From contig NC_068985.1 in NCBI RefSeq assembly GCF_001194135.2, positions 119,755,234-119,797,859 of the forward strand: a stretch of 42,626 bases of DNA, written 5' to 3'. Shown here piece by piece: positions 5,901 to 40,162 of the stretch. This DNA is from Octopus bimaculoides. Its lineage: Eukaryota. The notes beneath the pieces are model-generated. The model was not told where the DNA came from. It made no database searches and was given only the letters and a program-made list of their open reading frames with translations. Both the position numbers and the translations under genes were made by a program. Each line of letters opens with the position of its first letter. Position 1 is the first letter of the stretch.

Positions 5901-6311
5901 AACTTCGAAATACTTTTAATGCTAACGTGTTTTCTATGTCATTACATTTATTGTTCGTGATTTTATGAGTGATGTTCCTTTTCTCCTGACTTAAATCGTT
6001 ATTTCCATAATACCTCCTATCTAACATATATCTACTTATCGCTTATTGTCTTCTTTGATGTATTAAAATAAATCGAATTTAGAAAAGATGTGAAAGTGAT
6101 TTTATCAATAAATGCAAAATAAAATGGAAAACTGCATTGAAATTTGAAGGAGATTCGTGTGTTATTTCTAGCAGGTTGAGCGATTTCGTAAATGCTTCTT
6201 TGTTCGTTTGTCTTCCGTCCGGTATCGAATGGAGGACAAATGTTCTCTAAATTGCAGCTGCTGTTTAGAGTTATTTCGAAATTACATTCAGCCCTACCAC
6301 ACAGCCACTCA

Positions 6312-6909
6312 GGATCTTTTTTAAAACGGGGCCACATTTTTCATTAATGTTTTACGTAGTGTTTTTGGTACCGAAAGACTTTCAAACTTCGTATATTTAT
6401 CTATTCTGTGTTATAGAACAGAAAAATATTTTTGTATTCGAATTTATTTCATGTAAAAAATTGTCTTATTTCGATAATTTCAACAAATCACTGACAAGTA
6501 TTCAGTTGTTTACATTTACTCCTTTGGCTGAATAAGCCATAGCTTCGTTTTATTTGCTTTTTTCATTTTAAATTTGCTTTTTTCATTTTCTTTTTTTGTT
6601 CTTCGCTTTATTTGCTTTTTTCTTTTTAAATTTGCTGTTTTACCCTAACCCTAACCCTATCACCGATAGAATTGTTTCAGAATCGTTTGTTTATGTAGTC
6701 GGCACTTAATGTATATCGGCTGAATGGACGTCAGTGATTGGTTGAAATTACAGAAATACGACAAATTTAACATGGAATAACTTAGGGATTTCTTTTTTTT
6801 TAAAGAAGACTAAGAGAAAAAGATGTTTTATATGACACATTCTACCAGTGTTCCAAGTTTCAAAGTGTTTCGTTAATGAAAAATGTGGCCCCCGTTTTAA
6901 AAAAGATCC
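6312..6909. mobile_element. Non-autonomous foldback DNA transposon (MITE) with GG termini, 8-bp TSD and internal CCCTAA repeats
   Basis: Terminal ~36 bp are inverted (GGATCTTTTTTAAAACGGGGCCACATTTTTCATTAA, one indel), with imperfect arms extending ~200 bp. TSD GCCACTCA at 6304-6311 and 6910-6917. CCCTAACCCTAACCCTA at 6643-6659. Confidence 0.92.
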
Positions 6910-7339
6910 GCCACTCATATTCTGCATGTTCTACAAAACTGGAGTTAGGCTCACAACAGAGTACAACGCTATTTGTTCTTTAGAATTGCCTGGGTGCATT
7001 GCCACTTCTTCTCAGGCATTCCCGTCCAATGTGTCTCTCCGCCTTTTTGTGTCTAGCCAGGCTTCGCACTAATAATAGTATTTCGACATTTCTTCCCTGA
7101 TCGTCCGACCATTGGAATTTTCTCCTTCCTCATACATTTCCCAGAGGTGTTGACTTACGATGTTTCAAGAGGAATATTCATGGCGTCAATCACACTGGCC
7201 TGGAAAGCCATGAGTATTTCCTTGATTTCTGGAGCCAGAAAATGAAGAATCAAGTGAATCAGAGAAAACTGAGGACACTTCGTCTGACATCTGTTGGGAA
7301 CTGGTAAATATAATTCTGATTGACATTGCGTTACTTAGC

Positions 7340-7970
7340 CCGTCGGTAACGCTTTCACGTGATTAGAGAAAACGAGGGAGAGATAAATGTCCATGACATG
7401 AGGTAGAGGGAATGTAATTGTAACGCTTTCACGTGATTAGTTGAAGGGAAAGAGAAGAGAAAGAAAAAGGAGAGAGAAAAAGAGGATAAGGTGAAGAGCG
7501 AGACTGAAAGAGGGAGAAAGGAAAAGAGACAAAGAGAGAGACAGAGATAGAGGGAGGGAGAAAGACGGAGAGAAGAGAGAGAGAGAGAGAGGGAGGGAGA
7601 AAGACGGAGAGAAGAGAGAGAGAAGGAGAAAGACGGAGAGAAGAGAGAGAGAGAAAGAAAGAGAGAGAAGCGTCCATACCACGAGGTAGAGGGGATGTAA
7701 TCGTAACGCTTTTAAGTGCTTAGTTGGAGGGAAAAAGAGGAGAAAGAAAAAGGAGAGAGAAAAAGAGGATAAGGCGAAGAGTGCGACTGAAAGAGAGAGT
7801 GAAATGAAAAGAGAGAAAGAGAGAGAGAATGATGGAGAGAAGAGAGAGAGAGAGAGAGAGAGAGTGGGAGAGATAGAGATAGAGATAGAAAGAGAGAGAG
7901 AGAGAGAGAGAGAGACAAAGACAGAGAGAGAGAGAAGCGTCCGTGCCGTGATGTAGAGGAAATATAANNN
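7340..7970. repeat. Composite ~280-bp tandem repeat with GA-rich bodies
   Basis: Header ...GAGGTAGAGGGxATGTAATxGTAACGCTTT... at ~7400 and ~7680, with partial header pieces at ~7345 and ~7940. Each header is followed by a similar purine-rich tract. Confidence 0.7.
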
Positions 7971-8025
7971 NNNNNNNTAGCGGAGTGATGTTCTGATGGT
8001 GAGGTTAAAGAAGGGCTGAGAGAGA

Positions 8026-8065
<40 letters not shown>

Positions 8066-9989
8066 GAGTATGAGAAAGACGGAGAGACAGAGAAAAGAGG
8101 CAGAGAGAGAGAGAGAAAGGGGGGGGGAGAGTTGATGGTGTAGTTCTTAAACCGGATGGTGATCTTCTGTCGGGTGGCTTATTTAATCCTAGTAAACAAG
8201 AAATCAGAGCGGCAAAATCTAGTAAAAATCCCACAGAGCATCTCATCCAATGTTTTAATAATTCTCCCATAATTCAGCCACTCCACTATCCTAGTCCGCT
8301 GCTCCATCTTATTGACTCCGAAAGGATGAAGAGCAAACTTTACCTCACGATTTGAACTCCGAGAACAGATAACAAAAATGAATAACAAGAGAATATTTTA
8401 TCCTACTCTCAAATAAATGTGTCTTTTTTTTCACCAGCAATCAAGGCAAAGGCCGAGGTTATTCTCATGACGGGGAGCTAACTCAAGCGCTTCCAAGAAA
8501 GCGTATTCTGCAAAAGCAGCAAAGGGCCAGTGATAGCGTTAAACCGGTCGACGTAATTGTTCTTCCAATCATAACTATACACAATAACACGGAACTGCTG
8601 ACACCTTAACTAGATGTTAATGCAAATATGCAATTCTCGTTAACAGCAATAATTAATTTTATGCTGCGTTAGATACTACTTTGCAATTCAACACATCTTT
8701 CTACTAAACCACACGACACACAGACGCCTATCACCCACATACACACACGCACGCATCTCCCTGTTATACACATTCAAAATGCACACATGGCTTCACGTGC
8801 AAAAGTTATCCACAACCATTTCACAACAAAAAGCAAAAAAGCAAAAAATGAAACAACGAAAGCCCCACAGCATCTCAGAGCTGTCATGCCTTGCTATTCC
8901 ATGTATCTTAATTCCATACAACTGCTTAAAACAATAACATCATAATAACAGTAGCAGTAACATTAGCAACAACTTCAAAAAAACGACAACATGCAGTTTA
9001 TAAAGAATAAGACAAAAAAGAAAAAAAAGATGCATTGATTCATCAAACATTAAAAAAAGGAAAAGATAAGACACGAATTAGTAAGAAAAAATTTAGAATT
9101 GCGATGATTGTTAAGAGGTTTCTGTGAACAGAATAGACACTTATCTGATATTGGAAGAAAGTGGAAAAACAATAAAATACACAGGAAGCAACTCAATGTA
9201 AGCTAAGTAGATAATAATGTTGCTTATGTTTTAACTGATATTATAGCATTCAGGTACATAAATGCACACAACCTATCATAAAGAAAATCTCACACACACA
9301 TACAAACACACACATATGAAGTGCTTAGTTGTATTGCTACGAAGACCACTGTTCAATAAAATACTCAATATACATTATAAAGTAGAGTTAATAATTTTTT
9401 TTATATGAATATTGCCTCTCCGAGTGAATCATCCGTTTCGAGTTACTCCTTAGCGCACATAAAGTTCCACTGGTAAATATATTTTATATTGATAACAGAA
9501 ATTAATCATTGTATTACTTCGTGTTTATCAATGCATAATGTCGTTTTTAAGTGATTGATCGACAGAGAAGTTAGTGGATGTCATACAAAATACCTAGCGG
9601 TATTTTCCCGATATTATACCTTCTGGATTCCAAATCTGCAGAGGTGAACTTTGCTTTTCATCATTTTGAATCGAAAAAAGAAAGAAGCAGTTAAGTTGAT
9701 GGCATCGACTAATACCTTTCCGCCAAAATTTTAGATCTGACTTCTATGCAAAAAAAAAACATTAACATAGAGTAACTTCGATTATCCATGGTTCCATATT
9801 CTAATCAGGGATATATTTGTATGGTAAGTGCTTTGATCTCAGGTCATGTCCTGAAACTAAAACGATTGCGTTGTGGAAGTAGAGACACTCAAAGACCATT
9901 ATCTTTACTTAAACATTTACCGTGTGTAATATATCGAAATTTTTGCCGTTCGAAACAGGCACCTGATCACAGCAGCACAAATTTTGTCT

Positions 9990-10226
9990 GCGAGAAGGTC
10001 ACAATTTCGAGCAACAAGAATGTTGGCACCATGTTGTTTTGCAAACAACTCACACATGCAAGTGCTACCAGTCGAGAACTCCGCATACCGGAAGCCAGCA
10101 AGTGTATGGGGTCATCAGGAGAGAATGCGCGCCGTTTCGGGGCCTACCTCTCGACGGCATCAATGCGCATCGGCCTCCCCCACTGATATGAGGCCCCGCT
10201 TGCTAGATCAACTGGTTACAAAAAAA
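9990..10226 (+). other. Unidentified GC/CpG-rich segment ending in a poly(A) run (possible retroposed insert)
   Basis: Sharp compositional shift from the AT-rich flank, followed by about 16 A at ~10210-10226. Confidence 0.35.
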
Positions 10227-10644
10227 AAAAAAAAAGGTTCAATGTTTCTCTAGCCATCGCTCATCGTCTCTTTTTAACCAAAATAAATAAATGTTTGAAT
10301 GAAGTAACAGTCTTTGTGTGTTTCTCAATGGCTAACTCTTGTCTTCCACGCTGCAATCATTATATTTGAGTTATTTTACTCTTTTACCTCTTATTTGAGT
10401 CACTGACATCCACCCCTTACTGGGGTGCTGCCTTCGAAAAAGAACTGATGTTTGCGTCGTCTGGGAAGTGAACCTAGTTCGACTGCTTAGAAGATAACCA
10501 TTTTCAAAGTCGGACTTAAAAATTGATTTCTCAGTGAAACTATATATATGAGATGTATTGGCATCCAGAAGATCCAAGGTGGAAGGTAACGCTATGCAAA
10601 ATCCTCCACAATCCTTTTTAACTCTCCAAGCTTATTTTACTTGT

Positions 10645-11035
10645 TTAATACTACACATATAGGCATGCATATGCGTACGTATGCGGATGTATGTGCGTAT
10701 GTGTATAGGTGTGTGTGTGTGTATGTGTGTGTGTGTGCGCGATGCGTGTATGTATGTATACATGTGCATGTATACGCGTATGTTTGCGCGCGTGTATGCG
10801 TATATGCATTTATCTATGGGTATGCGTGTGTGTGCATATATATATGTGTGTGCATGCATGTGTACGTATGTTTGTATACGCATGTGTATGCAGACATGCA
10901 TATGTGTGTATATGTATGTGTGTGTATGTGTATATATATATATATGCATGCATGCCTACGGATTTAAATACACAAGTACGCAGGCCTATTTAATAATGCA
11001 TACACACGCATATATGTACGTGCGTGCGTGCCTAT
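10645..11035. repeat. Complex (TG/TA/CA) low-complexity microsatellite tract
   Basis: Alternating purine-pyrimidine repeats. Source of the overlapping MCVCV-type ORFs. Confidence 0.9.
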
Positions 11036-11099
11036 ATCGATGTACACTTCTTTCTTTCTTTCTTTCTCTCTGATTCCTCTCCCCACACTATCACATTAG

Positions 11100-12590
11100 T
11101 CAGTAGAATAAACACGTAAGTCTATTTATAGAAACTTGACCGTTCTTAGTGTTCTTCCCTTCCGTTTTCTGGTTTACTACTCACTTTAGAAACCCCACTC
11201 CTATACCTTTTCTTTACCAATCCCTTAATGCCCGTCTAACATATCACCCCACTTCGCACATCTCACACATATTCATTACTTACATTCTTATCTCTTCCTA
11301 CCTCTCCTATACTCCTCTCCCATTCCCCCCTCATAATATCTTGACCACCAACTAACACACCTTTTTCATTATTTAGATAATATTTTGTTTAATTCCTGGA
11401 GAAATTTACTCGGTGGATTTGGGATAGTAAGGAAGCGAGAGTTCAATTTCGAAATGAGCAGTGACCTTATAGCAACAATTCCACCAGGTTGTGTAATTAA
11501 TCTTTTCATTCATCTGTTGATTTTTACTTGAATCTCAAATAATTTATTTTCAAAATCCTTTTTAGCCATAACCATTAAATCTATTGAAAATATTACACCC
11601 AGAGGTTTGAAGTCATCTGGGTTAAATTCAATTTTTAATTTAGATAAGTGTGTGACTGAGCTGCTCTTTCTTACATCTACCCATATCAATTAAGACTTAT
11701 CATAATTAATTTTAAGTCCAGATATATCAGCATAAAAGTTCAGTGTCAACTGTAGTTTCAAAAGACTCTTGTGAACCATCTAAAGTGAACTCTGTATCGT
11801 CTGCATAGTGCGTCAACAGATACTCCCCATTATCAACTGTAATTCGTTTAATATCTCTGTTCTTTCGTATAAGACCACCCAGGACCTCGACACAGAGGTT
11901 GAAAGTATATGGAGTGAGAGGATCACCCTGTCTACAGCCCCGCTCAACAGGAAACCAAAGAGACAATGTACTATTAATAGTCAGATAAGATCTAGCACTA
12001 TTGTACAGAATATTGAACCACTTACAAATGTCATCACCAGAACCAAAAAAAAGCTAATATTTTGTTTATAAGTGACGATGAGATAGAATCAAATGTTTTC
12101 TCAAAATCTATTAAAAACAACATTCCCAGCATATCATTTGATTCTGTGTGGTTCATCAAATCATATATCAGTCTATTGTTATCGCCAATGTATCTGTTAG
12201 ATATTAATCCTGTTTGATTAATACTAACCAACTTTGTAAGGATACTTTTGAACCTCTCAGCAATAACAGATGAGAGAAGTGTGTACGCAGAAGCAAGAAG
12301 TGAAATATGTTTCCAGTTCTTCAGGAAACGCTTGGGCTTATCTCCTTTTCGAATACAAGTAATAATACCTTGCCTCTGTGTCACCGGCAGATAACCCTTA
12401 GCAAAACTATAACTGAATGACCTCAACAAAAACAGATAAATCTTTCCAAAAGAATTTATAAAGATCATAGATGAACCCATCTAAACCTGGACTTTTATTA
12501 TTCTTTGCCTTTTCAAACATTCCAAGAGTTCTTCGTGAGTTATTGGGCCTTCCAATGAGTCAGACTCTCCCTTACTAAGCCTATATAAGT
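11100..12590 (-). mobile_element. 5'-truncated, decayed L1/Tx1-clade LINE (AT-rich lineage), ORF2 RT domain
   Basis: Fragments include EGPITHEELL..KSPGLDG, QRQGIITCIRKGDKPK, NQTGLISNRYIGDNNRLIYD, LIDFEKTFDS, RGCRQGDPL, THYADD and RSLLISKLN..TIPNP. A purine-rich putative 3' UTR lies at ~11100-11370 (boundary uncertain). Confidence 0.92.
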
Positions 12591-13007
12591 CCTGGGGTCG
12601 ATTTATTCGACTAAAGGTGGAGGTCTAGCATGGCCGCAGTGAAATGACTGAAAAAAGTAACAGAATAAAAGAATACCTACAATTTTGCATTCCTTTGAAT
12701 ATTCATATCTTTATATTTAAACAGTTTTCGTTCATATAAATACTTCATGTTTCTCTCTCGTATTAAGATAGTTCTTCGAATGGCATGCGAATGTGGGAGC
12801 CTGGATACAATTGCCGAGGCAGCTAGAAGTACCAGGCAAATTTACCTCAATTTCATATAAAAAGAATATCTTGCATATGAAGACCTAGATATATAGTTAA
12901 AAACAGAAGGAACTATTTGGTCATCATTCTGTTAGATTATGTCTGATCTGATGCCAAACGATAAAGGTTTAAAATAACGTCTAAAGACTGATAGCGGTTA
13001 GATATTA

Positions 13008-13220
13008 CGAGTCGGTGACTGGCAGAATCGCTAACAAGCCAGGCAAAATGTTTAGTATCATTTCGTCCGTCTTTACATTCTGAGTTCAAATTCCACGCAG
13101 TCGACTTTGCTTTTTATCCTTTCGTGGTCGATGAAATAAGTATCAGTTGAGCACTGGGGGCGATTTAATCGACTTACCCCTCCCCAAAATTGCTGACATT
13201 GTGTCAAAATTTGAAACCGA
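13008..13220 (+). mobile_element. tRNA-headed SINE, family 2 (Nin/Deu-like central domain)
   Basis: tRNA-like head (GAGTTCAAATTCC B-box) plus core GTCGACTTTGCxTTTxATCCTTTCGxGGTCGATxAAATAAGTA. Further copies at ~8310-8375(-), 9560-9735(+), 19955-20182(-), 27885-28045(-), 35375-35500(-), 35668-35868(+), 36045-36426(-, two) and 41795-42150(+, two). Confidence 0.85.
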
Positions 13221-13431
13221 TATGATATTCATGAAACTGCTTTTGCCCATTTGTAAAAAAACGTAAACTTATATTGGGTGAGTGTAAATAAAACAATGTA
13301 TAGTTACCTGTTGTCTTGATCGAAAGACACACTACTCTATGCAAGCTCATTTAATTCACAATTTGGTTTAACTTTAGACCAGACTCTCCAGCCGTCTGGC
13401 CCTGCCGAATTAAAGCTCTGGTATAGTTCAC

Positions 13432-13755
13432 AGGTTGAGGCGTGTGGCTTAGTGGTTAGGGTGTCAGCATCATGATTGTAAGATTGTGGTTTCGATTCGT
13501 GGACCGGGCGACGCGTTGTGTCCTTGAGCAAAACNNNNNNNNNNGTAAGATTGTGGTTTCGATTCGTGGACCGGGCGACGCGTTGTGTCCTTGAGCAAAA
13601 CACTTCATTTCACGTTGCTCCACTCCACTCAGCTGGCAAAAAAGAGTAACGCTACAATGGACTGGCGTCCCGTCCAGTTGGGGAACACATACGCCATTGA
13701 AAACAGGAAGCCGGGCCCATGAGCCTGGCTAGGCTTTAAAAGGGCGCATTTATTT
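13432..13755 (+). mobile_element. tRNA-headed SINE, family 3 (V-SINE/Meta-like core)
   Basis: GTGGCTTAGTGG A-box, GGTTTCGATTC B-box, TGTGTCCTTGAGCAAAACACTT core and ATGGACTGGCGTCCCGTCCAG. Interrupted by a 10-N scaffold gap with a duplicated overlap. Confidence 0.8.
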
Positions 13756-14119
13756 ATTATATAGTTTACAGAAGAACAATTCTTTCTGTGTATCTCATTG
13801 TAACTCTTTTACTTGCAGGTAAACATGACATTGTTTTCAAAGCTGGAGCTAGGCTCCACCTAGTTAAAAAAACCTGAAACAAGCCGTATGCTACGATGGA
13901 AACCTTGGGATTTTAACAATAGTAGAAAGTTGGATGTCTGAAGGATATAGTATTGACTCTATGATTTTATGAATTGCTCCAGTTGGAAAAATCAGCACCT
14001 ATGAGTTTTTCATGGCCTCTAGGCTGGAACAGAAAAACTATTCTCATAGCAGAGACCTGGATGAAATATTTTCAACAAAGCCGACCCTACTAAAGGCATT
14101 CAGTCTGTTATCTTTTCCT

Positions 14120-14415
14120 TATATCAGTCATTGGACTGCAGCCATACTTGCGTACCGCCTGAAGGGCTTAGTCGAACAAATCCATCCAAGTTTTTTAAAG
14201 TTTAGTACTTTATCGTCTGCTTCGAGACCCACTATTCCAAGTAAAAATATGTAAGCAGCATATCTACCAAAGTTGGTCCAAGTTAATTCAGAAGGCATTG
14301 CTTGGTCCAGAGCTATAATAGAGGACTTTTGCCCAAATTCCACGCAATGGGACTGAACACGAAACCATGCGTTTGCAAAATTGAACTTCTTAACCACACA
14401 GCCATTTCTGTGCCT
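14120..14415 (-). mobile_element. Internally deleted SINE family 1 copy
   Basis: Tail piece CAGTCATTGGACTGCAGCCAT and head GGGACTGAACACGAAACCATG...ACCACACAGCCA. Confidence 0.65.
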
Positions 14416-15280
14416 ATGATAAATTTAAGGTGCTAAACTAGGTAATGGATTGAGTCTGCAATTCATAAACAGTTATATTCCAACCTGTGGGCTTTCACAC
14501 ATTCTCAGTTTCCATCTACATTACTTTATTAACAAATTTCTTAATCGCTGGGCCATGTGAGGAGCCTGAATGTCTGATGTGTGACAACCCTCATCTTTGT
14601 AAAATATCTTCTGTGAATACATCCACTGTTACACGGACATCTTAGGCCACGAGAAATTCACAGATTATAAAATATTTTCAAAAAAATCTATGCGAATCCA
14701 ATCTCAGCTTGTCTATGCATCATGATGATGCTTGTTAATGCTGAAAGAACACATCCCAAAGCGAAAACACTCATACGAAATAAAAAAAAAAGAACAAAAA
14801 AACAGCTATTTGTGTGTGACGTAGAAGATGAGATATGAGTTTGATTTCTGGTAATTCTTTTCTCAGACAGATCTAAAATAAGGATGAAAAAAAAAAGAAG
14901 CAAAATCGAAAATACATTAAAGCAAAAGAATGAAACGGAAGAACATGAAGAAAAATAAACATAAACAAAATTAAAGAATGCTTGATCTTTATCATGGTTA
15001 TTGTTTCTTCTAAGTAGCTTAATTACATCGCAGATCTTCACCAGGATCTTACGATGGTAGTGGGATATAGAAAAAAGTAGTTTTGTGCAAATCGGTTAAT
15101 ATATTTGTTTGGTCTTAACATTGTGTATTTCTTTTTTTCTGATAAATCACATTATTAATTCATCTCATTGAGTGAAGAGGTAAACATCATATATAACACA
15201 CGCTCATGCACACACTCACACACACACACACACACACATACACATATATAAACACACACAAACACACACGCGCGCACAAT

Positions 15281-15318
<38 letters not shown>

Positions 15319-16062
15319 TATACATGTAAGCACTCACATAAAACATACATATGCACACATAGAAACAAAGAAGCATGCTAAAAAATGGTCTTGTTTCTCG
15401 AAGAATTAATAGTATATTTTTTACCAGTTCTTTATGTGAATTGTCCATCTAGTATACTTTTTCAGATATAAAATTACAGTCAGGAAGTGAGGTAGCAAAG
15501 TGGTTAACGCTTCATGTACAACACGCTAGTCCACATATCCTTTGCTTTCTAGTTGTTACATTCCGAGTTCAAATTCTGACGTTGGTCATATTAAGGCTAC
15601 TCTTCACACAACTAAGAGAAAGAGTCGAGACCGATAACAACAGCTGCTTGTTTCTGCAATCCGAGATACGTCCCATCATATTTACACAATCCATGGGCTT
15701 TGATATTGGGGGTCTCTGAAGAGCAAACACAATGCGGCTTCGCACTCACGACATTTTCTCGTCTATATTCAAAATCACTCTCGAATGGTTACGAGGTTCC
15801 AGAACACTTGAAACCACCTTAGTCAACAAAGAAATGCTGACGATGACAATAACTGCAATGCAGTTCATGAGTTGAGATAACTCTATATGACTTCATGGGA
15901 CTGTACGCTGGTTTGAAAGGAGATGCATTTTTAATTACCTACTGATATGTGTGTGTGATTGTTCAGTTTCATTTCAAGAATTCTTGCCAATAGAAAAAAA
16001 AGCCCGTTTCTAATCAAGATCCAACGTTCCTTCATTGGAATTTAAACACCAACAGGGTATTT

Positions 16063-17216
16063 TTGTATGTATGTATGTATGTATGTATGTATGTATGTAT
16101 TTGTGCAGATTTGTATGTTTTACTTGTATGTATTCTCAGGCATATAGTTGCATATTTACACATTCTCATACATATATATATAAATGATAAACTTCTGGAA
16201 AGTTGTACAGATCTTTACAGTTCCCGTGATGAATTGGATCTGTAGTCTTCGAATTAGCTTTCTCCTTTCTGGTTTTGAGAAGCCTAATTTCTCAAAATTA
16301 GTATTTAGGCAGTGTGTTACATATACCAAGGCTCCAATAATAACAGCTATAAACCAGAATTTGTAATCTGGATAGATTAACTGCACATTTCTCAATAGTT
16401 CAACGTAGGTATTCTCTTTTTCACTGATCTTCAACTTTATATTAACATCCGCCGGGTCGCTAATTTCCACAACTGTACACAGTTTCTCTTCTCTACCTCA
16501 AATCATTATATCAGGTCTGTTGTGCTTACATTTTATAAAGGTCTTCACTGGAACATTCCACCAGTACTCCTTTTTATTATTAGTGGCCCTGGCTTCTACC
16601 ATACTGTGTTCTTATTTCTTTGTCCTAGGGATTATCCTTTCAACGGACTTCTTTATAGAGTGTCCTAGCTACAACATCATGTCTCATCGGTAGGTAATAC
16701 CGTGATGATATTTTCGGACAACTGCTTATGATGTGGGTGATATCTTCGATGTCAACTCCACAAAGTCTGCATCGGATGTCACATTTTACTGCTTTTCCTG
16801 CATTTCTATCCCTTTTGTGCATCAGGTACTTAGTCGATACTTCCTTTCCTGGATTTCAAACGTATACTCTTCAAATGGGGAGGTAGTAATCCGGCAATTG
16901 GTCCATGAAAGACTGCTTCGATGATCAACGTTACTATCACCTCCCAGGTTTCTACATAGTCTTCTTCACATATAGGCTCGTCCTTTCATCTGACATGTTG
17001 CGGTAGAATCGTGCGACTTCTTTGGGCACGCATTGTAGGTTATCAGACAATAAATGTTGCTTAAGGAGCTGCCTCCCAAGTCTTATGATGTTATCAGCCT
17101 CATGTAAGCAAACTTGGTCAAGGGATTCACTTCAACACTTGGTCGTTAAAAGATGTTGCCGAAGGGATATGATACGGCATTCAAAGGCATTTGGGATCGA
17201 TATTAAACCTCTGCCA
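16063..17216 (-). mobile_element. 5'-truncated R4/Dong-clade non-LTR retrotransposon with restriction-like endonuclease (copy A)
   Basis: GRGL (RT thumb) ... VDHRSSLSW ... CRLCGVDIEDITHIISSC (CCHC knuckle), RHDVVA, WWNVPVKT..HNRPDIMI, VVEISDP, EKENTY, IIGAL (PD-(D/E)xK). Short 3' UTR, then (TACA)n. Several stops and frameshifts. Confidence 0.92.
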
Positions 17217-17451
17217 TGTATGCATGCATGCATGCATGTATGTATGCATGTATGTATGTATGTATGTATGTATGTATGTATGTATGTATGCATGTATGTA
17301 TGTATGTATTTATACATGTATGTATGTATCTATGTATTATATGAGTATGTGTATGTGCAAGTGTGTGTATGTGTGCATAGGCGAAGAAGAGTGAAGGGTT
17401 GTTAGAAGTTTTGCCGACAGCGAATGACAACAGCTCTCTTGGAATATGTTG

Positions 17452-17509
<58 letters not shown>

Positions 17510-17570
17510 GTATGTCTGTCTGTCTGTCTGTCTATGTATGTATGTATGTATGTATCTATCTATCTATCTA
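17216..17570. repeat. (TGTA/TGCA)n and (TCTA/TCTG)n microsatellite block
   Basis: Direct reading. It separates Dong copy A from Tx1 copy A. Confidence 0.9.
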
Positions 17571-18705
17571 AGGAACGAAGGTGTTGGAGCCGCGTGAGAG
17601 ACCCGGGTGGCGGAGGCGCAACAGGGCAACAAAACCACCATTCGGTCTCTGGTGGAACAGGGGCGCGAACTGCTCCAGCCAAGCAAAATGTGTGAGGCCT
17701 TTCAGCGGCACTTTGCTCGACTGTTTGGGACGAGTGGCGAGCGAGAACGCAGGGTGGACTTCAGTGCCTACCTGCGTAGCCTGAGACGACTCTCGGCAAG
17801 AGAGGCGGAGTGCTGCGAAGGTGCCATCACGGCGGCGGAAGTGAGGGACGCGATGGCGGGATGCTCGAGGGACAAATCTCCGGGTTTGGATGGTCTGCCC
17901 TACGAGCTTTACAACTGTAAGCCAGACTTGTTNNNNNNNNNNACAAATCTCCGGGTTTGGATGGTCTGCCCTACGAGCTTTACAACTGTATGCCAGACTT
18001 GTTTGGAGACGTCTTGGTGGCGGTGTACTGCAACTGGCAGCAGAACGGGAGCATTCCCGGTTTTGTGAGCCGAGGAGCCGTAACGCTGCTGAAGAAAGTT
18101 CTAAACAAGGGGGTCGTCTTAGATAACTTTAATCCTATCACTCTGCTCAATGCAGACCTGAAAATTTTGGCCAAGGTGTTAGCCAAGCGGTTGGCGCTTG
18201 TCATGGAGAAACTGGTCGGCAAGACGCAAACGTGCGCCGTGCCGGGCAGGAGCATCCATGACAACCTCCATCTGATGCGCTACACCATAGAGCGGCTAGT
18301 TAAGGAACCTGGCATGGATGGGACCCTGATCAATTTAGATCAATGGAAATCTTTCGATAGGGTAGACCATCAATACAATGTTTTCATAGCGGCCGGCTTC
18401 AGTCCCATTTATCGCGGCTGAATAGCTGCCTTGTTTGGAGACGTCTTGGAGAACTGGGACGAGATAACGCGAAGGGTGGCCACACTACTCCGTCATCTAC
18501 TACTTCCTGACCGTCGTTCCTTTTCCCGAACCTACCATCACCAAGCTGGAGCGAATCCTCTTCCGCTTCTTGTGGAAAGGAAGCGTTCCGATAGTTAGGC
18601 GATCTGTTTGCTGCGAACACCCGTTAAAAGGACAGGGCATGTCGTGGTTGATGATGCGCAGACACGCACGGAGACTGAAACATCTCCGGCTCTACGTATA
18701 CAACG
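17571..18705 (+). mobile_element. Decayed Tx1-clade LINE (GC-rich family), copy A, RT region with internal deletions
   Basis: EGAITAAEV..DKSPGLDGLPYELY, PITLLNADLKILAKVLAKRL, QTCAVPGRSIHDNLHLMR, NLDQWKSFDRVDH, then FLWKGSVPIVRRSVC..MSWLMMRRHARRL. Confidence 0.93.
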
Positions 18706-19195
18706 GCACTCAGTGACAATCTCCTGTTCCGAGATTGTAAACGCAAAGCCTTCAAAGTGTGATGTGTTGTAGTAGTCTTGTGTCCAAGTGAAGCTACGTT
18801 TCGTGTCAATTCTACAGTTTTCGTCAAGCTTCCGGGCAACATACCCATGCATAGACTATTTTGTATGATGAGTGCTTTCCATCTGGGTCTTCTCTGTGGT
18901 AAGAGAGCCCAGCTGTTTTGGGGCTGTATAGGAGATCATCAGGGAGAGAATGCTTCTTGAGGAGATCGCTGCCAACTCGTATTATGTTGCTCACTTCACT
19001 TTTCAGCATCGCATTTATGTATTTATTTTTGTTGCTGCTGTTTAGCAGGTGCTACCTCAGTGATACCATACGGCATGCGAAGGCCGTCTGCACTGATCTT
19101 AAGCCTCTACTGCCTTCATTTCTTCTTAGGTAGAGCCTGTCAACATCACTGCTTCTGTGCCTGTTCCCAGTTGTCAGGATTTTGCAGGTTTTTTT
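18706..19195 (-). mobile_element. R4/Dong-clade fragment (copy B, different subfamily)
   Basis: KTCKILT..SDVDRLYLRRNEGSRGL, MHGYVARKLDENCRIDTKRSFTW, SHFEGFAFTISEQEIVT. Collinear with but divergent from copy A. Confidence 0.85.
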
Positions 19196-19409
19196 ATGTA
19201 TGTATGTATGTATATTTGTGTGTGCGTGTGTGCGTGTGCGTGTGTGTGTTTGCGTGTGTGTATAACGAAATCGCAGATATACCCATAGTGACGAGTGGTT
19301 CATGGTGGAGACTATTTAAAACATTTTTATTTTATCTCTAATTAGTAACAGTTAACCTTGGTCTAAACAACAGCAACAACAACAGTCACTATTTTTTAAA
19401 TTCTTTTAT

Positions 19410-19835
19410 TCTTTTACTTGTTTTAGGCATATGACTGTGGCCATGCTAGGCTAGAACACCAGGAGTTATTTCTTGAGCCTAATACTTATTCTATCAGTCC
19501 TTTTGTCGAACCGCTATATTACGGGGACGTAAGCACACCAACACCGGTTGTCAAGCGGTGATGGTGGAAAATGCAGACACAAAGATACACACAGATACAC
19601 ACACGTGTGTGTGTGCGTGTATATGTGTGTGTATGTGTGTGTGTGTGTGTATGTGTGTGTGTGTGTGTGTACGACGGGCTTCTTTTAGTTTCCGTCTACC
19701 AAATCTACTCACTAGGCTTTGGGCAGCCCTAAGTTATAGTAGGAGACACCTGCCCAAGGTGCCACCCAGCAGGACTGAACCCAGAACCATGTGCTTTGGA
19801 AGCAAGCTTCTTACAACACAACAACACCTGCGCCT
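19410..19835 (-). mobile_element. SINE family 1, full-length diverged copy
   Basis: Aligns end to end by eye with 797-1204. Confidence 0.85.
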
Positions 19836-21226
19836 ACTGCCGATTCTATTTTTATGCAATCATTAAATTAAATATTTTACCAGAGAAGTCTATTTATTAG
19901 ATTGTACTTGACTGACACTTATTTTATTGATCATAAAATGTAGAAGAACGGAACAAGATATCGGTTTCAAATTTTGGCACAAGGCTACCATGTTCGCGGG
20001 AGGGGTTAAGTCGATTACATCGACCCCATTGCTCAACGGGCTCTTATTTCACCGACCGCGAAAGGATGAAAAGCAAAGCAAACTTCAGCAAAATTTGAAC
20101 CCAAACATAATGACGGACGAAATGCCGCTAAACCTTTTGCTCGGCATGCTAATGATTCTGTCTGGTCACCGCCTGAGATGTTAACACGATATTGCATCAT
20201 ATTTTGTCCAGCACTCAAAAGATATTTTTACTCTCCGACCTGCTTTAAATTTAATTATTAAAACAAAAATAATTTTATTATTTAAAACAATCTCGTTTCT
20301 TTCTATTATCTTTATTATTCATCCGTGATATGTTGCATGACGTATTTATTAGTTTGTTTCCGTGGTTGAGTTATTTGTTGTTCCTTTTTCTTAGATGAAG
20401 CAGAAATGGTTGTGTTCTTGAACTTGGCACAGACATCCAAAACAAATGGGGGAAACAATGAATGCCTTGTTATTTCGAAATCAAGAGGCCTGCTTGAAAC
20501 AGAGCTCACTCTCTCCAAGGGCCAGGTGGTTCTACTAAACCACACTCGATAATCCTGGAATTCAATCACCGTGGTGTTACCAGTATTATTGTTCGACGAT
20601 TGGTCAGCCTTGATTTACGTGGCTTTGAGATCAATACTCCGAATATAACTAACACGTCTTGGTTTTCGTTGACATATTGTAGCTCTCTGTATGCATAAAA
20701 ATATCAGGGAATTTCGTCGTTCCCGTGTATGACACAAGCTTGCAACATGACGGATATTTAACTAATACTTTTAGCAGGTCATGCGACCGCAAACAAATTT
20801 CCTTCCCTAGTCATAAGGTGTTGTAGAGCATGTTGTTCACTATCTTATATATATTTGTGGAAATATACTAATACACTCAATTAACTGATTATTGATAGAA
20901 AATCATTATTGACAGAAAAGCATTATACGTAATATGTAAATTTAGTATAAGTTTGCTTATGCCTTTTCTATCTTCTCTTCTATTCCAGATAGTGTTGATC
21001 TATGTGATTTTACTAATATGCTTTTCATACCCACCACGCTGTGATAATCTTGAACTGATATGTGTTTACAACTTTTTAATTTAACAAAGATTGTCTCGAT
21101 TGTAATTATTACAAGGTAGACAATCTTTAGCGGGATTAGAAATGTGTATTTGAAATTAAGGAATAAGGAAGAATACACATCGAAGAAATGGGTGTGTGTA
21201 TGTGTATGTGTGTGTATGTGTGTGTA

Positions 21227-21257
<31 letters not shown>

Positions 21258-22393
21258 ATTTGCCAACTTGTTACATAGTTATTTTGAATTCAATCATTAA
21301 ATAGGAACAGTTCTCTTGTGAAAAAAAACACGGTTTGATAAATAGTGGTAATTCATATATTGGCTAGGAGTATTAATTTTTAATTAATGTTATTTTTATG
21401 TGGTATATATAGCATATGACGATGGACTTTAGAGCGCTGGGTTGACTGAATCAGTCGAGTGACATGAAAGACTCCTTACGGGTTTTTAGTTCTGAGTTCA
21501 AATCATGCCGAAGCTCATTTACAGAGTTGGCACTCATTCACCAGTTACGAGATCTCTGTAGAGGGGGAAAAAAATACCTTCTAAACTATAGTTCCATATA
21601 GACATTATTCATATTTCTTTACTATTCCTTCCCTACTCCACTGAGTATTTCTGATCTGATAATAAAGTTTCAACATAGAAAACGGTCACAGATTTTGTTT
21701 TTCACTTCTTTTAATCATTCGATTGCAGCAGTTATTTTAAAATCGGGTACTTATTCTATCTGGCTCTTTTGCCGAATCATTAGGTTGCGTGAACGAAACC
21801 AAACTAACACACACACATACACGCACATGTGAGTGTATGTATATACGAGGGGCTTCCGCATAGTTTCTGTTTAACAAACTTACTCACAAAGTATTAATTG
21901 GTCCCGGGCTATAGCTGTAGACACAGTGAAATTGAAAGCGGAAACTATATGGTGGCAATGGAAGCTTCTTAACAGCACAGTTATGCCTGTGTTTGTATTT
22001 ATGTATAGCTATGAAATATATTTATACATTGCCACAATAGTAGCGGTTTACATCAAATCAACTCAACGTCATATTTCAGTTCTTAAAAATTAGTAAATAA
22101 TCCATTAATTCATATAAAAGACAGAAAATCTTGCCTGAGCAAAACGTATTTGTGTATACAAATTTTTAGTTACTTATATACCAGACACGAAATAATTAAA
22201 TCCTCTGAGTATAAATTTTTTAGACATCAGGATTTTTATTTTAATCCAATTATTATCTTATATTATTTATGCTTTCAATTTATTTATTCATTTATTTATA
22301 TTGATCTTTCGTATTTAATTTTAGAAACTATTAGATTATTCACGTATTAATAATTCCTACGCAAGTTGGTACTGAATAAGCTAGCGTAATATG

Positions 22394-22436
<43 letters not shown>

Positions 22437-23189
22437 ATTTTTATCATGTACTTTTATCATATTTATGCATACATACTTATATACACATGCAAATACGCAA
22501 ACACACACATACATATATATACAATATATACAAACGTACATACATACATATATGCCTGTGTATGTGCAGGAATAAATACATCACAATTATGACAAAAATA
22601 TATCTTTTGTGAAAAGCGAACAGTAGCAGAGTTTAATAAATATGACAATGAAATTATCCGGTTTAACACCAAAAGATATAATTATATAAGAGTACACCTG
22701 AAACCTAAAGTCACTTCAAAATTTAAAACAAAGTTATTTGATGTATTCTACATCTACAACAATAATGTATTCTATACCTACTTCTAGTATGGTATTTATT
22801 ATAGCACTTAGATGTTCACAGGAGTGTATAGATATGTGATGACTTCATCAAAAAAATAATACTTCCTTTATTGCCCACCAGGGCTGAAAACTAAACGTAG
22901 TGAACGATACACAGACGAGGGACAGTGAGGTTAAACATATAAAAAGCAAGCTCGATTAACAAAGAGATCAAATCAACAATATGCTTCCCTAATAGGGAGT
23001 GGGGGGAGTTCCACCGTAAGGTGACCAAAGAGGCTTCATGTACTTTGGACCCCTTAACACCAACGGTTCCTCAGAAAAGCCCCCTCTCTTCTCCCTTCCA
23101 TCCGGCCTACAGGCGCACACCTAGAGTAAGCCCATTCACGCAGGCCATTCTTTTCACATTCACTCACCTTTCAACGAACTTACCGGGTG

Positions 23190-23222
23190 ATAATTAATTC
23201 GTTTTATTGGCCACAAGGGCTA
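23190..23222 (-). mobile_element. 33-bp 3'-terminal fragment of another Tx1 subfamily inserted into Tx1 copy B
   Basis: Identical to 28075-28107 and interrupts the ERKV/SPGKF coding sequence. Confidence 0.8.
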
Positions 23223-23275
23223 CCTTCCTCTCCAGTGTCACTTTCCTTTTCAGATGGAACCTGAAAAAGTGAATC

Positions 23276-23758
23276 GGTAGAGATGGACTATATGTAATCT
23301 GAACCTTTCCCCACCTTATTTATTAATTTTTTTTACGGAATCCCACGTTTTAGGCTATGGAGATTCCGATTCTGAAAAAAAATGTTTTGAAAAATTTCAA
23401 TTCCCCCCCCCCCCACCAAGCAGGCTATTTACATGCTAGAAATAACAGCCAAATCTCACAAAACTAGTGTTAGGGTTAGGTTTAGGGTTAGGGTTAGGGT
23501 CAGGGTTAGGGTTAGGGTCAGGGTNNNNNNNNNNNNNNNNNNNNNNNNNNNNNNNNNNNNNNNNNNNNNNNNNNNNNNNNNNNNNNNNNNNNNNNNNNNN
23601 NNNNNNNNNNNNNNNNNNAAATTTTGAAATTGAGATTTTTGAAAATTCTTTTCCAGAATCGGATTCTCCATGGTCTGAAACATAGGATTCCGTAAAAAAA
23701 AAAACAAAATTTAAAAGGGGCGGGGGTATACCCAGATTACATATACTCCATCTCCACC
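23276..23758. mobile_element. Non-autonomous foldback DNA transposon with GG termini, 8-bp TSD and internal (TTAGGG)n array
   Basis: Inverted arms of ~130-140 bp start GGTAGAGATGGA / GGTGGAGATGGA. TSD AGTGAATC at 23268-23275 and 23759-23766. Removing the element restores the Tx1 reading GLIHFF. Confidence 0.93.
23470..23524 (+). repeat. Interstitial telomeric repeat (TTAGGG with TCAGGG/TTAGGT variants), running into a gap
   Basis: About 9 units visible before the N gap at 23525-23618. Confidence 0.95.
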
Positions 23759-26062
23759 AGTGAATCAGTCCTTGGCCGAAAAGGATAGTACACGTCTACT
23801 ACACTTTCAGTCGTGTCCACCACACAACCTTTATTGCCATAGCCACCAAGCAGAGAAAAATTGCCCTCCTTCCCGGCCTAAAGAAGGATGCGTACATACA
23901 ATGTACTCGGATGATAGCCGAATCCGTCCCACACGTGACAATAACTGTTCGACAAAGCTCCACAAGTCAGCAATGCGCGGACACTGTACGATAGCATGCA
24001 GAGCGGTTTCATCGCCCCGCGTGCATCTCGGTCAAGCCGGATTGACTGCACACCTGTACCTGTAGAGCTTATCTCGAACCAGCAGTGCCCTTCGTAGCAT
24101 TGCCAAGCCAGGGATTTCTGGAAGTTATCCATATTTCACGGCCCGAAAGTATTTCGGAACAGACCAGCTAGTTGATTCCTCTCGACGCCCAGGACGTCTC
24201 CGAGTACGTCGTCGATCTTGCGCTCCACTAATTCTCCATAGAACTCCAAGGTGGAATTTCCACCGACCGCATTGCTCGAATGGTCGAGGGCTGTGAGCGC
24301 TTGGAGACACTCTAGATACCAAGCGCCCTGCCTCGGTCAACGCTTGATCCAAGACTGTAGCTCCGTCAAGGAGACGAGGTGCGGAAAAGCGCGTTCGACA
24401 AACGGCGACTACACCTACTCACCGTTAAGGTATCGCTGGAGATGTCGCAGCCTCAGAGCATGTCTGGCCAACTTCAGCCACGGCATATCCATTCTTCCAC
24501 ACATCCACACAACGAGAGCTGACAGCAGATGGACCGTCTGACGAGCGGTACCTATCTTCTACACAAGAAAAGGAAGAGCAAACGTTCAGCCACAAAGTGG
24601 GGAAAGGGACGACAGTTAGGCGATAATAGATGACGGATGCGATGTACGCATTCCCCACTTCCGCCAGACCCTTCAGGGACAACTTCCTCTCTGCCTATTT
24701 CGGGGTGAGATTGGCTACCCTGATCGTCACCCTGCCCCGATTATTGTCCACTTGGGAGTCTGGACGAAACCAGACCCCGACCGATGTAACTGGGCCTTCC
24801 ATCCGGCGCCCTACAATGCTGTTGGTTGGCCGACCGACTTTTCCTGGTTGATCTTTGCTCCTATCACCGCTTCGTACTCCATTAGAGCAGTACCGATCAC
24901 CTCGATCTCCGCGGTGTCCGACACTATTAAGGTGACATCATCTGCTTAAGCCGACACGAACCTTACGCATTCCAGATCACGCGGAATATCCCTCGAAACA
25001 ACCAGCTTCCGCAACAATGGCTCGAGAGCCAGTACGTAGAGAAGAGGTGAGAGAGGGCATCCTTGACGGACTGAACGAGCGATACTAAACGAGTCCGAGA
25101 TGTGGCCATTTACTTTGACCACCGAACAGATGTTGCTGTGCATTGCAGCGATCCAGCCTCTGAAAACGGGACCGAAACCAGCCGCCTTGTGGACAGCCTC
25201 CAATTACAGATAGTTGACCCTATCAAAAGCTTCTGATTGATCATAGGGATGACGACCCCACGCATAGCAGATTTTCCATTAACAACATATCACAAAGTTC
25301 TTTCTTTTCTTTTCTTTTAAGTTAACATCACAGTTAACAGTTCTTTTAACACATGTAACGACGAAGTACATTTTAAAGAATATTTGAACAAACCTTCACC
25401 GTAATANNNNNNNNNNTTTTAACACATGTAACGACGAAGTACATTTTAAAGAATATTTGAACAAACCTTCACCGTAATAAGTTCCTTTCTTTCAAAACTC
25501 CTACTATAATCCAAGAAGTAGTGACCAACTGACATCTACGATCTTTTGGCTGCCACACAGTCCCATCTCTCTGTCCCTCTCTCTCATTGCTTCAGTCCCT
25601 ATCGGCTGACTGGTTCCTTTCTGACCATAGGCTCTCTCTTTCTCAGCCTCTGTCTGTCAGTCTCTCTGTTCATCTTGGTTGGCTGCTAGCCTTCACATCA
25701 ACTGCTGGACATTTTCACTTCATCCAACTCCCTGGCCAACTGCTTGATGTCAACTGCTGTCGCCAACTCCTTGTCCCCAACTGCTTGATGCCCACTCCTC
25801 TGGCCAACCGTTCGCGCCAATTCTTTGTTTATCACAAATACCGTAGCTTTACAGTGGTAGCTTACCCCCTCCCAAAGCTGGGTCAGTCCAGTACAATTCC
25901 TCACTTTTTTTCTGAACTTTTGGTGACNNNNNNNNNNAAAAATAGCTGTACTTGTTCACAAGACAAAGGAAATACCATTATCCTCAACAACCAGCATACG
26001 GTTTCAAAACCCAGCTCGGGAGATAGGGATATAACATTAATTTGTATTTTCGGTGGTCGCAT

Positions 26063-26100
<38 letters not shown>

Positions 26101-26198
26101 GCGCGCGCAACTACAAACACTCACGCACTCACAAAAACATTCGCTTTGTCTTTCCCACTATCTCCATCTCTCTATTTCTCTTCCTTTCTCTTCCCCTC

Positions 26199-26229
<31 letters not shown>

Positions 26230-26886
26230 ACACACACTCATTCTCTCCATTCTCTCTTCATTTATCATAGTCTATTAAACTTATTTTCTACTTCCATCGT
26301 TTTTTTTTGCAATCCAATTCAATCATTATTTTTAGAGTTGTAACGATTTCAAGTAATTTTCTTTCGATAATTCCAGTATAAGTTTCATGTTAGTTTTGTT
26401 TTTTTGATTTAGTTCTTTTTTTTTTTTCATGCAATTAATTTTATTCCATTCAATTCAATTAATTATCATTGCATTCAATTACAGGCAAATCTTTTCAGAT
26501 ATTGAATTCAAGGTATAATATCCGCTTCGCTTAATGCTAAAGGTGTGAAATTCTAAATAATTTACTTACAATTGACAAACTTTCATCAGAATATCAAAAT
26601 GTCTATGCAGTTATATATACAATAAAGGAAAACTGGTTCAGCCATGGCTACGTAGTAAGCTGTTTGCTTCCCTAATACATGGTTCCGGGATAAGTCCCAC
26701 TGCATGTCACCTTGAGCAAGTGTCTTCTACCATAGTTCCGGGTCGATTGAAGCCTTATGTGGGAATTTGGTAATATATACTATTCTATTAAAACCGAAAA
26801 AAAAATTTCGCACACTGTCAGTTAGAGTTTCACATTACTGTTCATCAGACAGTAATGATAATAGAGACTAATAGAGAAACTTATAT

Positions 26887-27010
26887 GGCACTGTCATGGT
26901 ATTAGCTGTCAGAAGTGAAAGTAGAAAAATCTGACAAGGAACGTTACTGCTGGTTTGAGTTGATTCTTTGGCTACTGACAGCTAATACCATGACTGGCCG
27001 GAGCGAGCTA

Positions 27011-27045
<35 letters not shown>

Positions 27046-27524
27046 ATCTATCTATCTATCACTCGAAAGTTATTGGAACAAATTCGACACCTCTATCCAT
27101 GCGTTTGAAAACACACAGAGTGGTCCCGAACGCGCAGTCGCGCGTCCGCGCTAGCTAGTCGTGAGTGGTCGATCCTATTATTTTTAAACTTCAAACTTCA
27201 TTTGTTTTCTATTTTGATAAATTCTCTCTGTTGAAAATTATATTTTTATATTTTAAATAATTTGCAATTTCAGAAAATATATTTTTATATTAAATTTGCG
27301 TTTTCTAATTTGATAAATTCTACAGACACAAACAGAGGTGAACGAGTGATAGATAGATAGATAGATATATAGAGAGAGATAGTGAGATAGACAGACAGAT
27401 AGACAGACAGACAGACAGCTAGATAACTCCGGCCAGTCAGTAGCCAAAGAATCAACTCAAACCAGCAGTAACGTTTCTTGTCAGTTCTACTTTCAACTCT
27501 GACAGCTAATACCATGACAGTGCC
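26887..27524. mobile_element. Non-autonomous foldback DNA transposon with GG termini, 8-bp TSD and mirrored microsatellite arms
   Basis: Arms of ~180 bp start GGCACTGTCATGGTATTAGCTGTCAGA, with (TCTG/TCTA)n mirrored as (TAGA/CAGA)n. TSD ACTTATAT at 26879-26886 and 27525-27532. Confidence 0.93.
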
Positions 27525-28064
27525 ACTTATATATATTGTGATAATATATAGGCGTTTATGGGTTCAATTTCAATGAATAAATTTTTAAAGAGATTGAGTA
27601 ATTATTTAACAAAAATAAAGGGGTGCAATGGAAAAGAACTGGAAATTGATTTTAACGGCGAAATAAATATAAACAATAGTTCAATAATAAAAATACTTTG
27701 TGTAAATGATATACAGTAGATGATCGTTGGAAGGTAGACAGAATACAATAGACTATATGAGGATTAAGAATTTGCAAGTAATTAAAAAGAATATAATAAA
27801 AATAGGCTGAAAAGTAAAAGCTAGAGTTATAAGTGAAATATGAAAACGAATAAAAATATAATAATAATAACAATAATCCTTTCTACTATAGGCACCAGAT
27901 GTAAAATTTTGGAGGAAGGGCAAGTCGATTACTCAACTGGTACTATTTCACCGAACCCGAAAGGATGAAAAGCAAAGTCGACCTCTGCGGAATTTGAACT
28001 CAGAACGTAAGGACAGATGAAATGTCACTAAGCATTTTGCCCGAGAAAAAGAAATAAATAAAAT

Positions 28065-31951: not shown

Positions 31952-32004
<53 letters not shown>

Positions 32005-40115: not shown

Positions 40116-40162
<47 letters not shown>

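Follow-up and report, generated by a model that had tools for sequence, protein, structure and literature searches.

The window analysed here, 42,626 nucleotides of Octopus bimaculoides (NCBI RefSeq assembly GCF_001194135.2, contig NC_068985.1, positions 119,755,234 to 119,797,859 of the forward strand), contains three foldback elements that we call E1, E2, and E3. The locus raises two questions: to which transposons do these elements belong, and why do two of them have telomeric repeats in the loop between their inverted arms? A first-pass annotation made from the sequence had claimed three elements with GG...CC ends, 8-bp target-site duplications, and long inverted arms. Our analysis confirmed all three, with correct coordinates for each of them. 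We think it reasonably probable that they are single copies of three unrelated, non-autonomous families of cut-and-paste transposons, of the MITE (miniature inverted-repeat transposable element) or foldback type.

E1 spans 598 bp (6312-6909) and has GGATC...GATCC ends, as seen by direct reading and in a gapped alignment that matches its left half to the reverse-complemented right half. It is a non-coding foldback flanked by two copies of the duplication GCCACTCA, at 6304-6311 and 6910-6917. The left arm (6312-6516, plus strand, 205 bp) pairs with the right arm (6708-6909, minus strand, 202 bp), and their identity in the gapped alignment is 82% over aligned bases and 69% when gaps are counted. 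The first 20 bp are perfectly matched, and 36 of the outer 37 positions agree, which makes a well-conserved terminal inverted repeat. The fold of the single strand has a z-score of -9.2 relative to shuffled sequences. The loop contains a T-rich tandem repeat (6552-6641) with a period of 20 bp and about 4.6 copies, in which two 41-bp copies lie 58 bp apart and are 93% alike. It is followed by a telomeric tract (CCCTAA on the plus strand, 6642-6659) of about 2.8 units, which is placed around 40 bp off the centre of symmetry.

E3 (26887-27524) is a non-coding foldback of 638 bp with GGCACTG...CAGTGCC ends and without a telomeric repeat. The duplication ACTTATAT is found at 26879-26886 and again at 27525-27532. 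The arms are the best matched of the three elements: the left one (26887-27059, plus strand, 173 bp) and the right one (27367-27524, minus strand, 158 bp) are 93% identical over aligned bases, and 81% identical with gaps counted, in a gapped alignment. The tip is perfect over 27 of 27 positions and the z-score of the single-strand fold is -24.6. Both arms are associated with microsatellites, (CTGT)n/(CTAT)n at 27008-27060 in the left arm and (GATA)n/(GACA)n at 27348-27425 with the right arm. The left arm also contains a third, internal, and inverted copy of the terminal motif (26966-26994, minus strand), in which 20 of 20 positions at 26975-26994 agree with the right-end copy (27499-27518). 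At the position of this internal copy the right arm is short of 15 bp, and the corresponding gap in the alignment falls between GTCA direct repeats. The internal copy may be a subterminal repeat of a binding site. In all three elements the outermost 26-37 bp are far better conserved than the remainder of the arms, and the functional inverted repeats are probably these conserved tips of 25-37 bp.

E2 (23276-23758) measures about 483 bp as scaffolded, including 94 N, and has GGTAGAG...CTCCACC ends. Its duplication, AGTGAATC, occupies 23268-23275 and 23759-23766. The left arm (23276-23402, plus strand, 127 bp) pairs with the right arm (23628-23758, minus strand, 131 bp) with an identity of 86% over aligned bases and 77% with gaps counted, again in a gapped alignment, and 24 of 26 positions match at the tip. 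Its loop carries an array of TTAGGG (23465-23524, plus strand) that comprises 10 units with 88% matches, spans the centre of symmetry, and enters an assembly gap. TTAGGT and TCAGGG variants occur among the TTAGGG units, and the last six whole units form two repeats of 18 bp (TTAGGG TTAGGG TCAGGG). The gap (23525-23618) consists of 94 N, a length that is an estimate, and is the only one within any of the elements. It hides part of the loop and the full length of the array, of which the 10 units are the visible part; the inner end of the right arm lies about 10 bp or less from it.

The window comes from a draft assembly that is interrupted by 14 N runs, and one must ask if the elements, or the array of E2, could be products of assembly, for example of inverted chimeras or of wrong scaffolding of a telomeric contig. 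The array adjoins a gap, and we looked for an overlap between the two sides of the 94-N gap and found none. Three gaps of 10 N, at 13535-13544, 17933-17942, and 25407-25416, have exact duplicates of 57-63 bp on both sides, which shows that they are unmerged overlaps of contigs and that the sequence there is continuous. The draft state, the unmerged overlaps, and the contact of the array with a gap speak for an artefact. The structure of the elements speaks against it. The arms are diverged and differ by indels, unlike the identical copies expected from chimeras, and E1 and E3 are free of gaps. As for E2, the contig on the left of its gap includes one copy of AGTGAATC together with the left arm, and the contig on the right includes the second copy together with the complementary arm. 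This match across the gap validates the join and places the array truly inside E2. Hence, we regard an artefact as highly improbable. The gaps at 7968, 13535, 17933, 25407, and 25928 are all outside the elements. The sides of the gap at 7968 lack an exact terminal overlap and share an AG-rich repeat alone (best local score 45, well off the edges), and those of the gap at 25928 have nothing in common. The duplicated bases at the 10-N gaps break reading frames, as exemplified by GLPYELYNC.PDL, which occurs twice in an open reading frame (ORF) of a long interspersed element (LINE). The same type of 10-N gap, with an exact overlap of 61 bp, is present at 12259-12268 of another O. bimaculoides locus used for comparison (L004, from GCA_001194135.2).

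How much do the three elements have in common, and could the common features arise by chance? All six ends have GG at the 5' tip of the respective strand, and all three duplications are exactly 8 bp long, with no possible extension to 9 bp. An exact match between 8-bp flanks has a chance probability of about 1.5e-5 per element, and GG at three independent tips one of about 3e-5, given a GG frequency of around 0.032. We scanned the window for direct repeats of 4-11 bp and then for terminal inverted repeats with at least 15 matches in 20 positions. E1, E2, and E3 were the only elements with a non-palindromic duplication of at least 7 bp, and the same scan gave no such element in 41 kb of other Octopus DNA, which consists of two loci of about 20 kb around Tc1-like genes of O. 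vulgaris and O. bimaculoides. A scan that started from the inverted-repeat tips recovered E1 and E3 and missed E2 because of a mismatch in its tip.

A further candidate was rejected. The segment 31804-31932 could be read as one more element with GG ends, with TTTATATAAA as its duplication of 10 bp, but this sequence is itself palindromic and the inverted repeat extends beyond it as far as TA flanks. The larger structure (31784-31952) is a near-perfect palindrome of 169 bp with 95% arm identity, TA flanks, and a (GATA)n tract directly after it, and some models of microRNAs match it as sub-threshold hairpins. From its sequence, it reads as a MITE of the Tc1/mariner type with a TA duplication, and not as a GG/8-bp element.

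Beyond the shared signature, the three elements are unrelated. The arms had been described as not obviously homologous, and a BLASTN comparison between the elements bears this out: its only result is the telomeric hexamer of E1 and E2. The GG tip is thus all that is common to the three, and the hexamer is an addition in E1 and E2. BLASTN revealed no other copies or fragments of the elements in the rest of the window, and we found no second copies in the 41 kb of Octopus loci. Exact patterns of the inverted-repeat tips had no match in JGI metagenome contigs or IMG/VR.

Do these elements encode anything? The peptides of the ORFs of E1-E3, pooled in one query against 5.8 billion predicted proteins, gave 3517 word candidates and none with an E-value of 1 or less. 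An ORF of E1 had 0 matches among 1.84 billion protein representatives. We also searched Pfam with the ORFs of the window, taking, up to about 37 kb, all those of at least 62 aa that remained after a low-complexity filter, and the ten most plausible ones of at least 90 aa in the whole window. This search identified no transposase of Merlin, Mutator-like element (MULE), or hAT, and returned only reverse transcriptase and a weak helix-turn-helix of Tc1 type, in agreement with the earlier proposal that the window lacks an autonomous copy. An origin from RNA genes or short interspersed elements (SINEs) was rejected, as scans with Rfam and for tRNA gave sub-threshold hairpins of microsatellites only, and no tRNA. 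With lengths of 483-638 bp (below about 800 bp), no coding capacity, inverted repeats, and target-site duplications, the elements have the structure of MITEs. The first-pass annotation had taken them for insertions of non-autonomous transposons, and the duplications, the inverted repeats, and the lack of homologues of the ORF peptides support this.

None of the 24 positions of the duplications has changed, whereas the arms have diverged by 7-18% and also differ by indels. This indicates that the insertions are fairly young and that the arms were already imperfect at the time of insertion. By analogy with what is established for DDE transposases, mobilisation would occur in trans: a transposase encoded elsewhere in the genome would bind the conserved terminal inverted repeats of 25-37 bp, excise the element, and reinsert it at a staggered cut of 8 bp, whose repair would leave the 8-bp duplication. 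Two results weigh against the interpretation of E1-E3 as members of transposon families. Only one copy per family was seen across the window, the 41 kb of Octopus DNA, and the metagenome and viral collections. Furthermore, no empty insertion site was found: when the joined flanks were searched for in the remaining window sequence and in all loci, nothing crossed the insertion point, so that no paralogous empty site was seen in this material.

Which superfamily could have produced these families? The exact 8-bp length of three of three duplications and the GG of three of three tips lead us to favour Merlin, the superfamily of DDE transposases related to IS1016/IS1595, as the most likely answer, and we hold this assignment with moderate confidence. 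Merlin elements are recognised by inverted repeats that are 24-462 bp long and start with a conserved 5'-GG, and by duplications with a length of 8 or 9 bp; newly described families all start with GG, and most have 8-bp duplications (Feschotte 2004, as summarised in PMC8101967). The first-pass annotation had noted the fit of the GG ends and 8-bp duplications to Merlin, and we find every testable Merlin feature in E1-E3: the 5'-GG...CC-3' termini, the 8-bp duplications, and inverted repeats within the range of lengths, both for the tips (26-37 bp) and for the arms (127-205 bp). The host genome is also reported as rich in Merlin transposase sequences, with 191 hits in Octopus bimaculoides, which is unusually many among bilaterians (PMC8101967). 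In contrast, internal arrays of telomeric hexamers like those of E1 and E2 are not part of the description of Merlin in the portion of that paper available to us.

Three points weigh against the assignment to Merlin. No Merlin transposase (DDE_Tnp_IS1595) was tied to the ends of E1-E3, and Pfam detected none in the window. The GG/8-bp signature is not exclusive to Merlin, and the mosquito MULE Muta1 makes duplications of 8 or 9 bp (PMC5225508). Finally, among the recently active families of O. vulgaris, 21 are Mutator and 2 are Merlin (PMC13282606).

The last two points lead to an alternative that seems unlikely to us, namely that E1-E3 are non-autonomous elements of Mutator-like or Foldback type, mobilised by MULE transposases. 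The arms of 127-205 bp are long and include internal repeats and microsatellites, which favours it. Tips with GG are merely common among MULEs, which counts against it, and Pfam showed no MULE domain in the window. All three elements have the GG that is invariant in Merlin (PMC8101967). The definition of MULEs relies on long inverted repeats and duplications of 8-10 bp (PMC5225508), and in the Mutator/Foldback family Tm1 the inverted repeats are composite and some members are MITE-like (PMC3169594); both facts speak for such an origin, as does the excess of Mutator over Merlin among the recently active families of O. vulgaris (PMC13282606). The length of the duplications argues in the opposite direction, because those of E1-E3 are all exactly 8 bp and those of MULE and Foldback elements are mostly 9 bp: among the 53 complete elements of Tm1, duplications of 8-10 bp are present in 45, and 9 bp is the commonest length (PMC3169594). 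In other words, E1-E3 resemble Muta1 (PMC5225508) and Tm1 (PMC3169594) in their long and internally repetitive arms, in being MITE-like non-coding derivatives, and in a duplication length of 8 bp that is possible in both. They differ from these elements, which have mostly 9 bp or a mixture of 8 and 9 bp, by having 8 bp throughout and no MULE domain nearby. With long arms and a duplication length that is in range but belongs to a minority class, a Mutator-like or Foldback origin is compatible with the data and not favoured by them.

Several superfamilies make 8-bp duplications. The shared GG/8-bp signature might therefore be a coincidence, with families that come from different 8-bp superfamilies, or from one that we have not considered; atypical hAT, P, Novosib, and Zisupton would be candidates. 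The ends of E1-E3 have only GG in common in the BLASTN comparison, which is consistent with separate origins. The low chance probability of GG at three of three independent tips is not, and the ends of hAT and P elements normally begin with CA or TA. For hAT, the 8-bp duplication is there, whereas the terminal consensus, short inverted repeats beginning with YARNG (CA or TA), is not, and the ends of E1-E3 start with GGA, GGT, and GGC. The 49 recently active families with terminal inverted repeats that are unclassified in O. vulgaris (PMC13282606) leave some room for a coincidence. On the whole, we consider it improbable.

The Merlin assignment does not imply a common enzyme. It had been proposed that one transposase system mobilises the several families, which fails in the strict sense, as the ends of 25-37 bp are unrelated beyond GG. 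DDE transposases bind specific terminal sequences, and cross-mobilisation requires similar ends. The three families, with their unrelated ends, would each need their own cognate transposase, possibly from one superfamily. What stands of the proposal is, at most, a shared superfamily; a single shared enzyme does not.

We now turn to the telomeric repeats, which the first-pass annotation had reported in two of the elements. This is clear for E2, with its 10 units, and thin for E1, with about 2.8. Tandem telomeric hexamers (at least two) occur at just two sites in the 39 kb of read bases of the window, 6643-6654 in E1 and 23482-23517 in E2, and both tracts are in the central loops of these elements, so that the association as such is real within the window. 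Neither the 41 kb of Octopus DNA nor any of 300 shuffled sequences contained a tract of at least two hexamers. Of the bases read, 4.1% belong to the three elements and 0.8% to the two loops. Both tracts would land by chance in the three elements with a probability of 1.7e-3, and in the two loops with one of 7e-5, but these figures are optimistic because the association had been noticed before it was tested. This caveat and the size of the tract of E1, which is just about 17 bp, weigh against a systematic link between elements and telomeric repeats. Given that E1 and E2 have no relationship, the two tracts cannot be the result of shared descent, and this suggests that some recurrent process feeds such loops.

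Where did the repeats come from? Our reading of their origin, made from the sequences of E1 and E2, is that the loop most likely held them before the last transposition of the element, and we put this slightly ahead of doubt. The repeats would be filler made by telomerase, picked up at the birth of a deleted or foldback derivative, then remodelled by slippage and carried along by the family. The higher-order repeat of 18 bp in the array of E2 indicates evolution by slippage after the synthesis of the repeats, while the duplications of the element are still perfect.

The opposite order of events is a more tentative possibility. The telomeric repeats would have been added after insertion, when the centre of the foldback broke and telomerase acted during the repair. 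Processing of a hairpin or cruciform, or stalled replication, would have caused the break, and the elements would be a sink, and not a vehicle, for interstitial telomeric sequences. The location of the tracts fits this scenario, since the array of E2 spans the centre of symmetry and the tract of E1 is near it, and tracts in two unrelated families are better explained by a recurrent process than by shared descent. The geometry fits it less well. The arms are merely 77-86% matched and the loops measure about 190-220 bp; diverged arms and long loops are poor conditions for the extrusion of a cruciform. Moreover, the array of E2 is not fresh, as it has variant units arranged in the 18-bp repeat, whereas the duplications around it are perfect.

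Addition after insertion also has a documented counterpart: in vertebrates, short interstitial telomeric sequences were inserted during the repair of double-strand breaks (PMC8537989). The tracts described there resemble those of E1 and E2 in being short, of TTAGGG type, and at internal chromosomal sites; they differ in being at unique sites of vertebrate genomes, whereas here both tracts are in transposon loops (PMC8537989). A search of the literature available to us gave no direct precedent for MITEs with internal TTAGGG arrays, a result that is not proof of their absence. We still prefer the presence of the repeats in the loops before the last transposition. A broader and decidedly speculative idea, which we think unlikely at present, is that the loops of GG-ended, 8-bp foldback transposons are a recurrent entry point for repeats made by telomerase, which the elements then spread. 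Entry would occur by interrupted gap repair at the birth of the derivative or by a break at the centre of the palindrome. If this were true, a sizeable share of the interstitial telomeric sequences of the octopus would be created or carried by transposons, and the two unrelated families with tracts in one 42-kb window would be a first hint of it.

Mollusc elements of similar appearance have been described. Pearl in oyster and DTC84 in Donax are MITE-like and have internal tandem repeats and tetranucleotide microsatellites; they have a putative AA duplication, inverted repeats of 10-20 bp, and a layout of L, core, microsatellite, and R, and may be Helitron-like (PMC3879986). Like them, E1-E3 are short non-coding elements of a mollusc, and the (CTGT/CTAT)n of E3 and the repeat of E1 with a 20-bp period recall their internal repeats. 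Unlike them, E1-E3 are flanked by duplications of 8 bp, have their ends in GG/CC, and possess long arms (PMC3879986). E1-E3 are not members of this group: the microsatellites of E3 are within both arms, and not at one end of a core array.

The remainder of the window is rich in repeats. Its G+C content is 36.7%, against 36.8% in the O. bimaculoides locus, and it has many microsatellites. Its comparison with five loci gave 54 alignments, the majority of which involve the two Octopus loci; the alignments cover several repeat families at 65-84% identity. Three non-octopus contigs from ENA (56 kb) have a Tc1-like element alone in common with the window. This Tc1-like transposon (40137-41628, minus strand) is frameshifted and of the DUF4817 + HTH_32 + DDE_3 type. 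Its DNA is 84% identical to a copy in O. vulgaris (locus L005), where the element has TA flanks and its ends read CAGGGTGT... A copy from an ENA contig that is unrelated shows 80% identity to it, and relatives of its protein are found in Octopus vulgaris, O. bimaculoides, arachnids, horseshoe crab, and lizard. The presence of relatives in these arachnids, horseshoe crab, and lizard suggests that the transposon spread horizontally.

Reverse-transcriptase fragments of LINEs are located at 12034-12480 (minus strand), 17590-18663 (plus strand), 23905-25273 (minus strand), and 28965-29311 (minus strand). They belong to at least two families. Copies from O. bimaculoides, and others from metagenome or Logan contigs, are 65-83% identical to them in DNA. 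An interspersed repeat of about 160 bp is present in at least five copies and in both orientations (13060-13218, 19963-20123, 27930-28023, 35700-35864, and 36259-36428). It is 72-80% identical to positions 6315-6475 of the O. bimaculoides locus L004 and probably represents a SINE. At 35.7 and 36.3 kb, two of its copies in inverted orientation give the false impression of an element with terminal inverted repeats. The exact 33-bp motif ATAATTAATTCGTTTTATTGGCCACAAGGGCTA is found twice, at 23190-23222 and 28075-28107, with unrelated flanks, and an (AAT)n run precedes one of the copies; the motif may represent the conserved end of a retroposon family. Finally, an AG-rich region (7378-7936) contains a 283-bp unit twice, with 82% matches, and adjoins the gap at 7968, beyond which there is similar AG-rich sequence.

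What do these elements mean for the biology of the octopus genome? E1, E2, and E3 are structurally ordinary, MITE/foldback elements of a known kind. The three small families, probably of Merlin type, would join the catalogue of cephalopod repeats, where many families with terminal inverted repeats stay unclassified. The link to telomeric repeats is curious, involves two cases only, and is the part most worth following. If tracts of hexamers turned out to be systematic in such loops, they would provide a concrete and testable route by which interstitial telomeric sequences arise and spread in an invertebrate, and would also call for caution in the use of telomere motifs to check assemblies.

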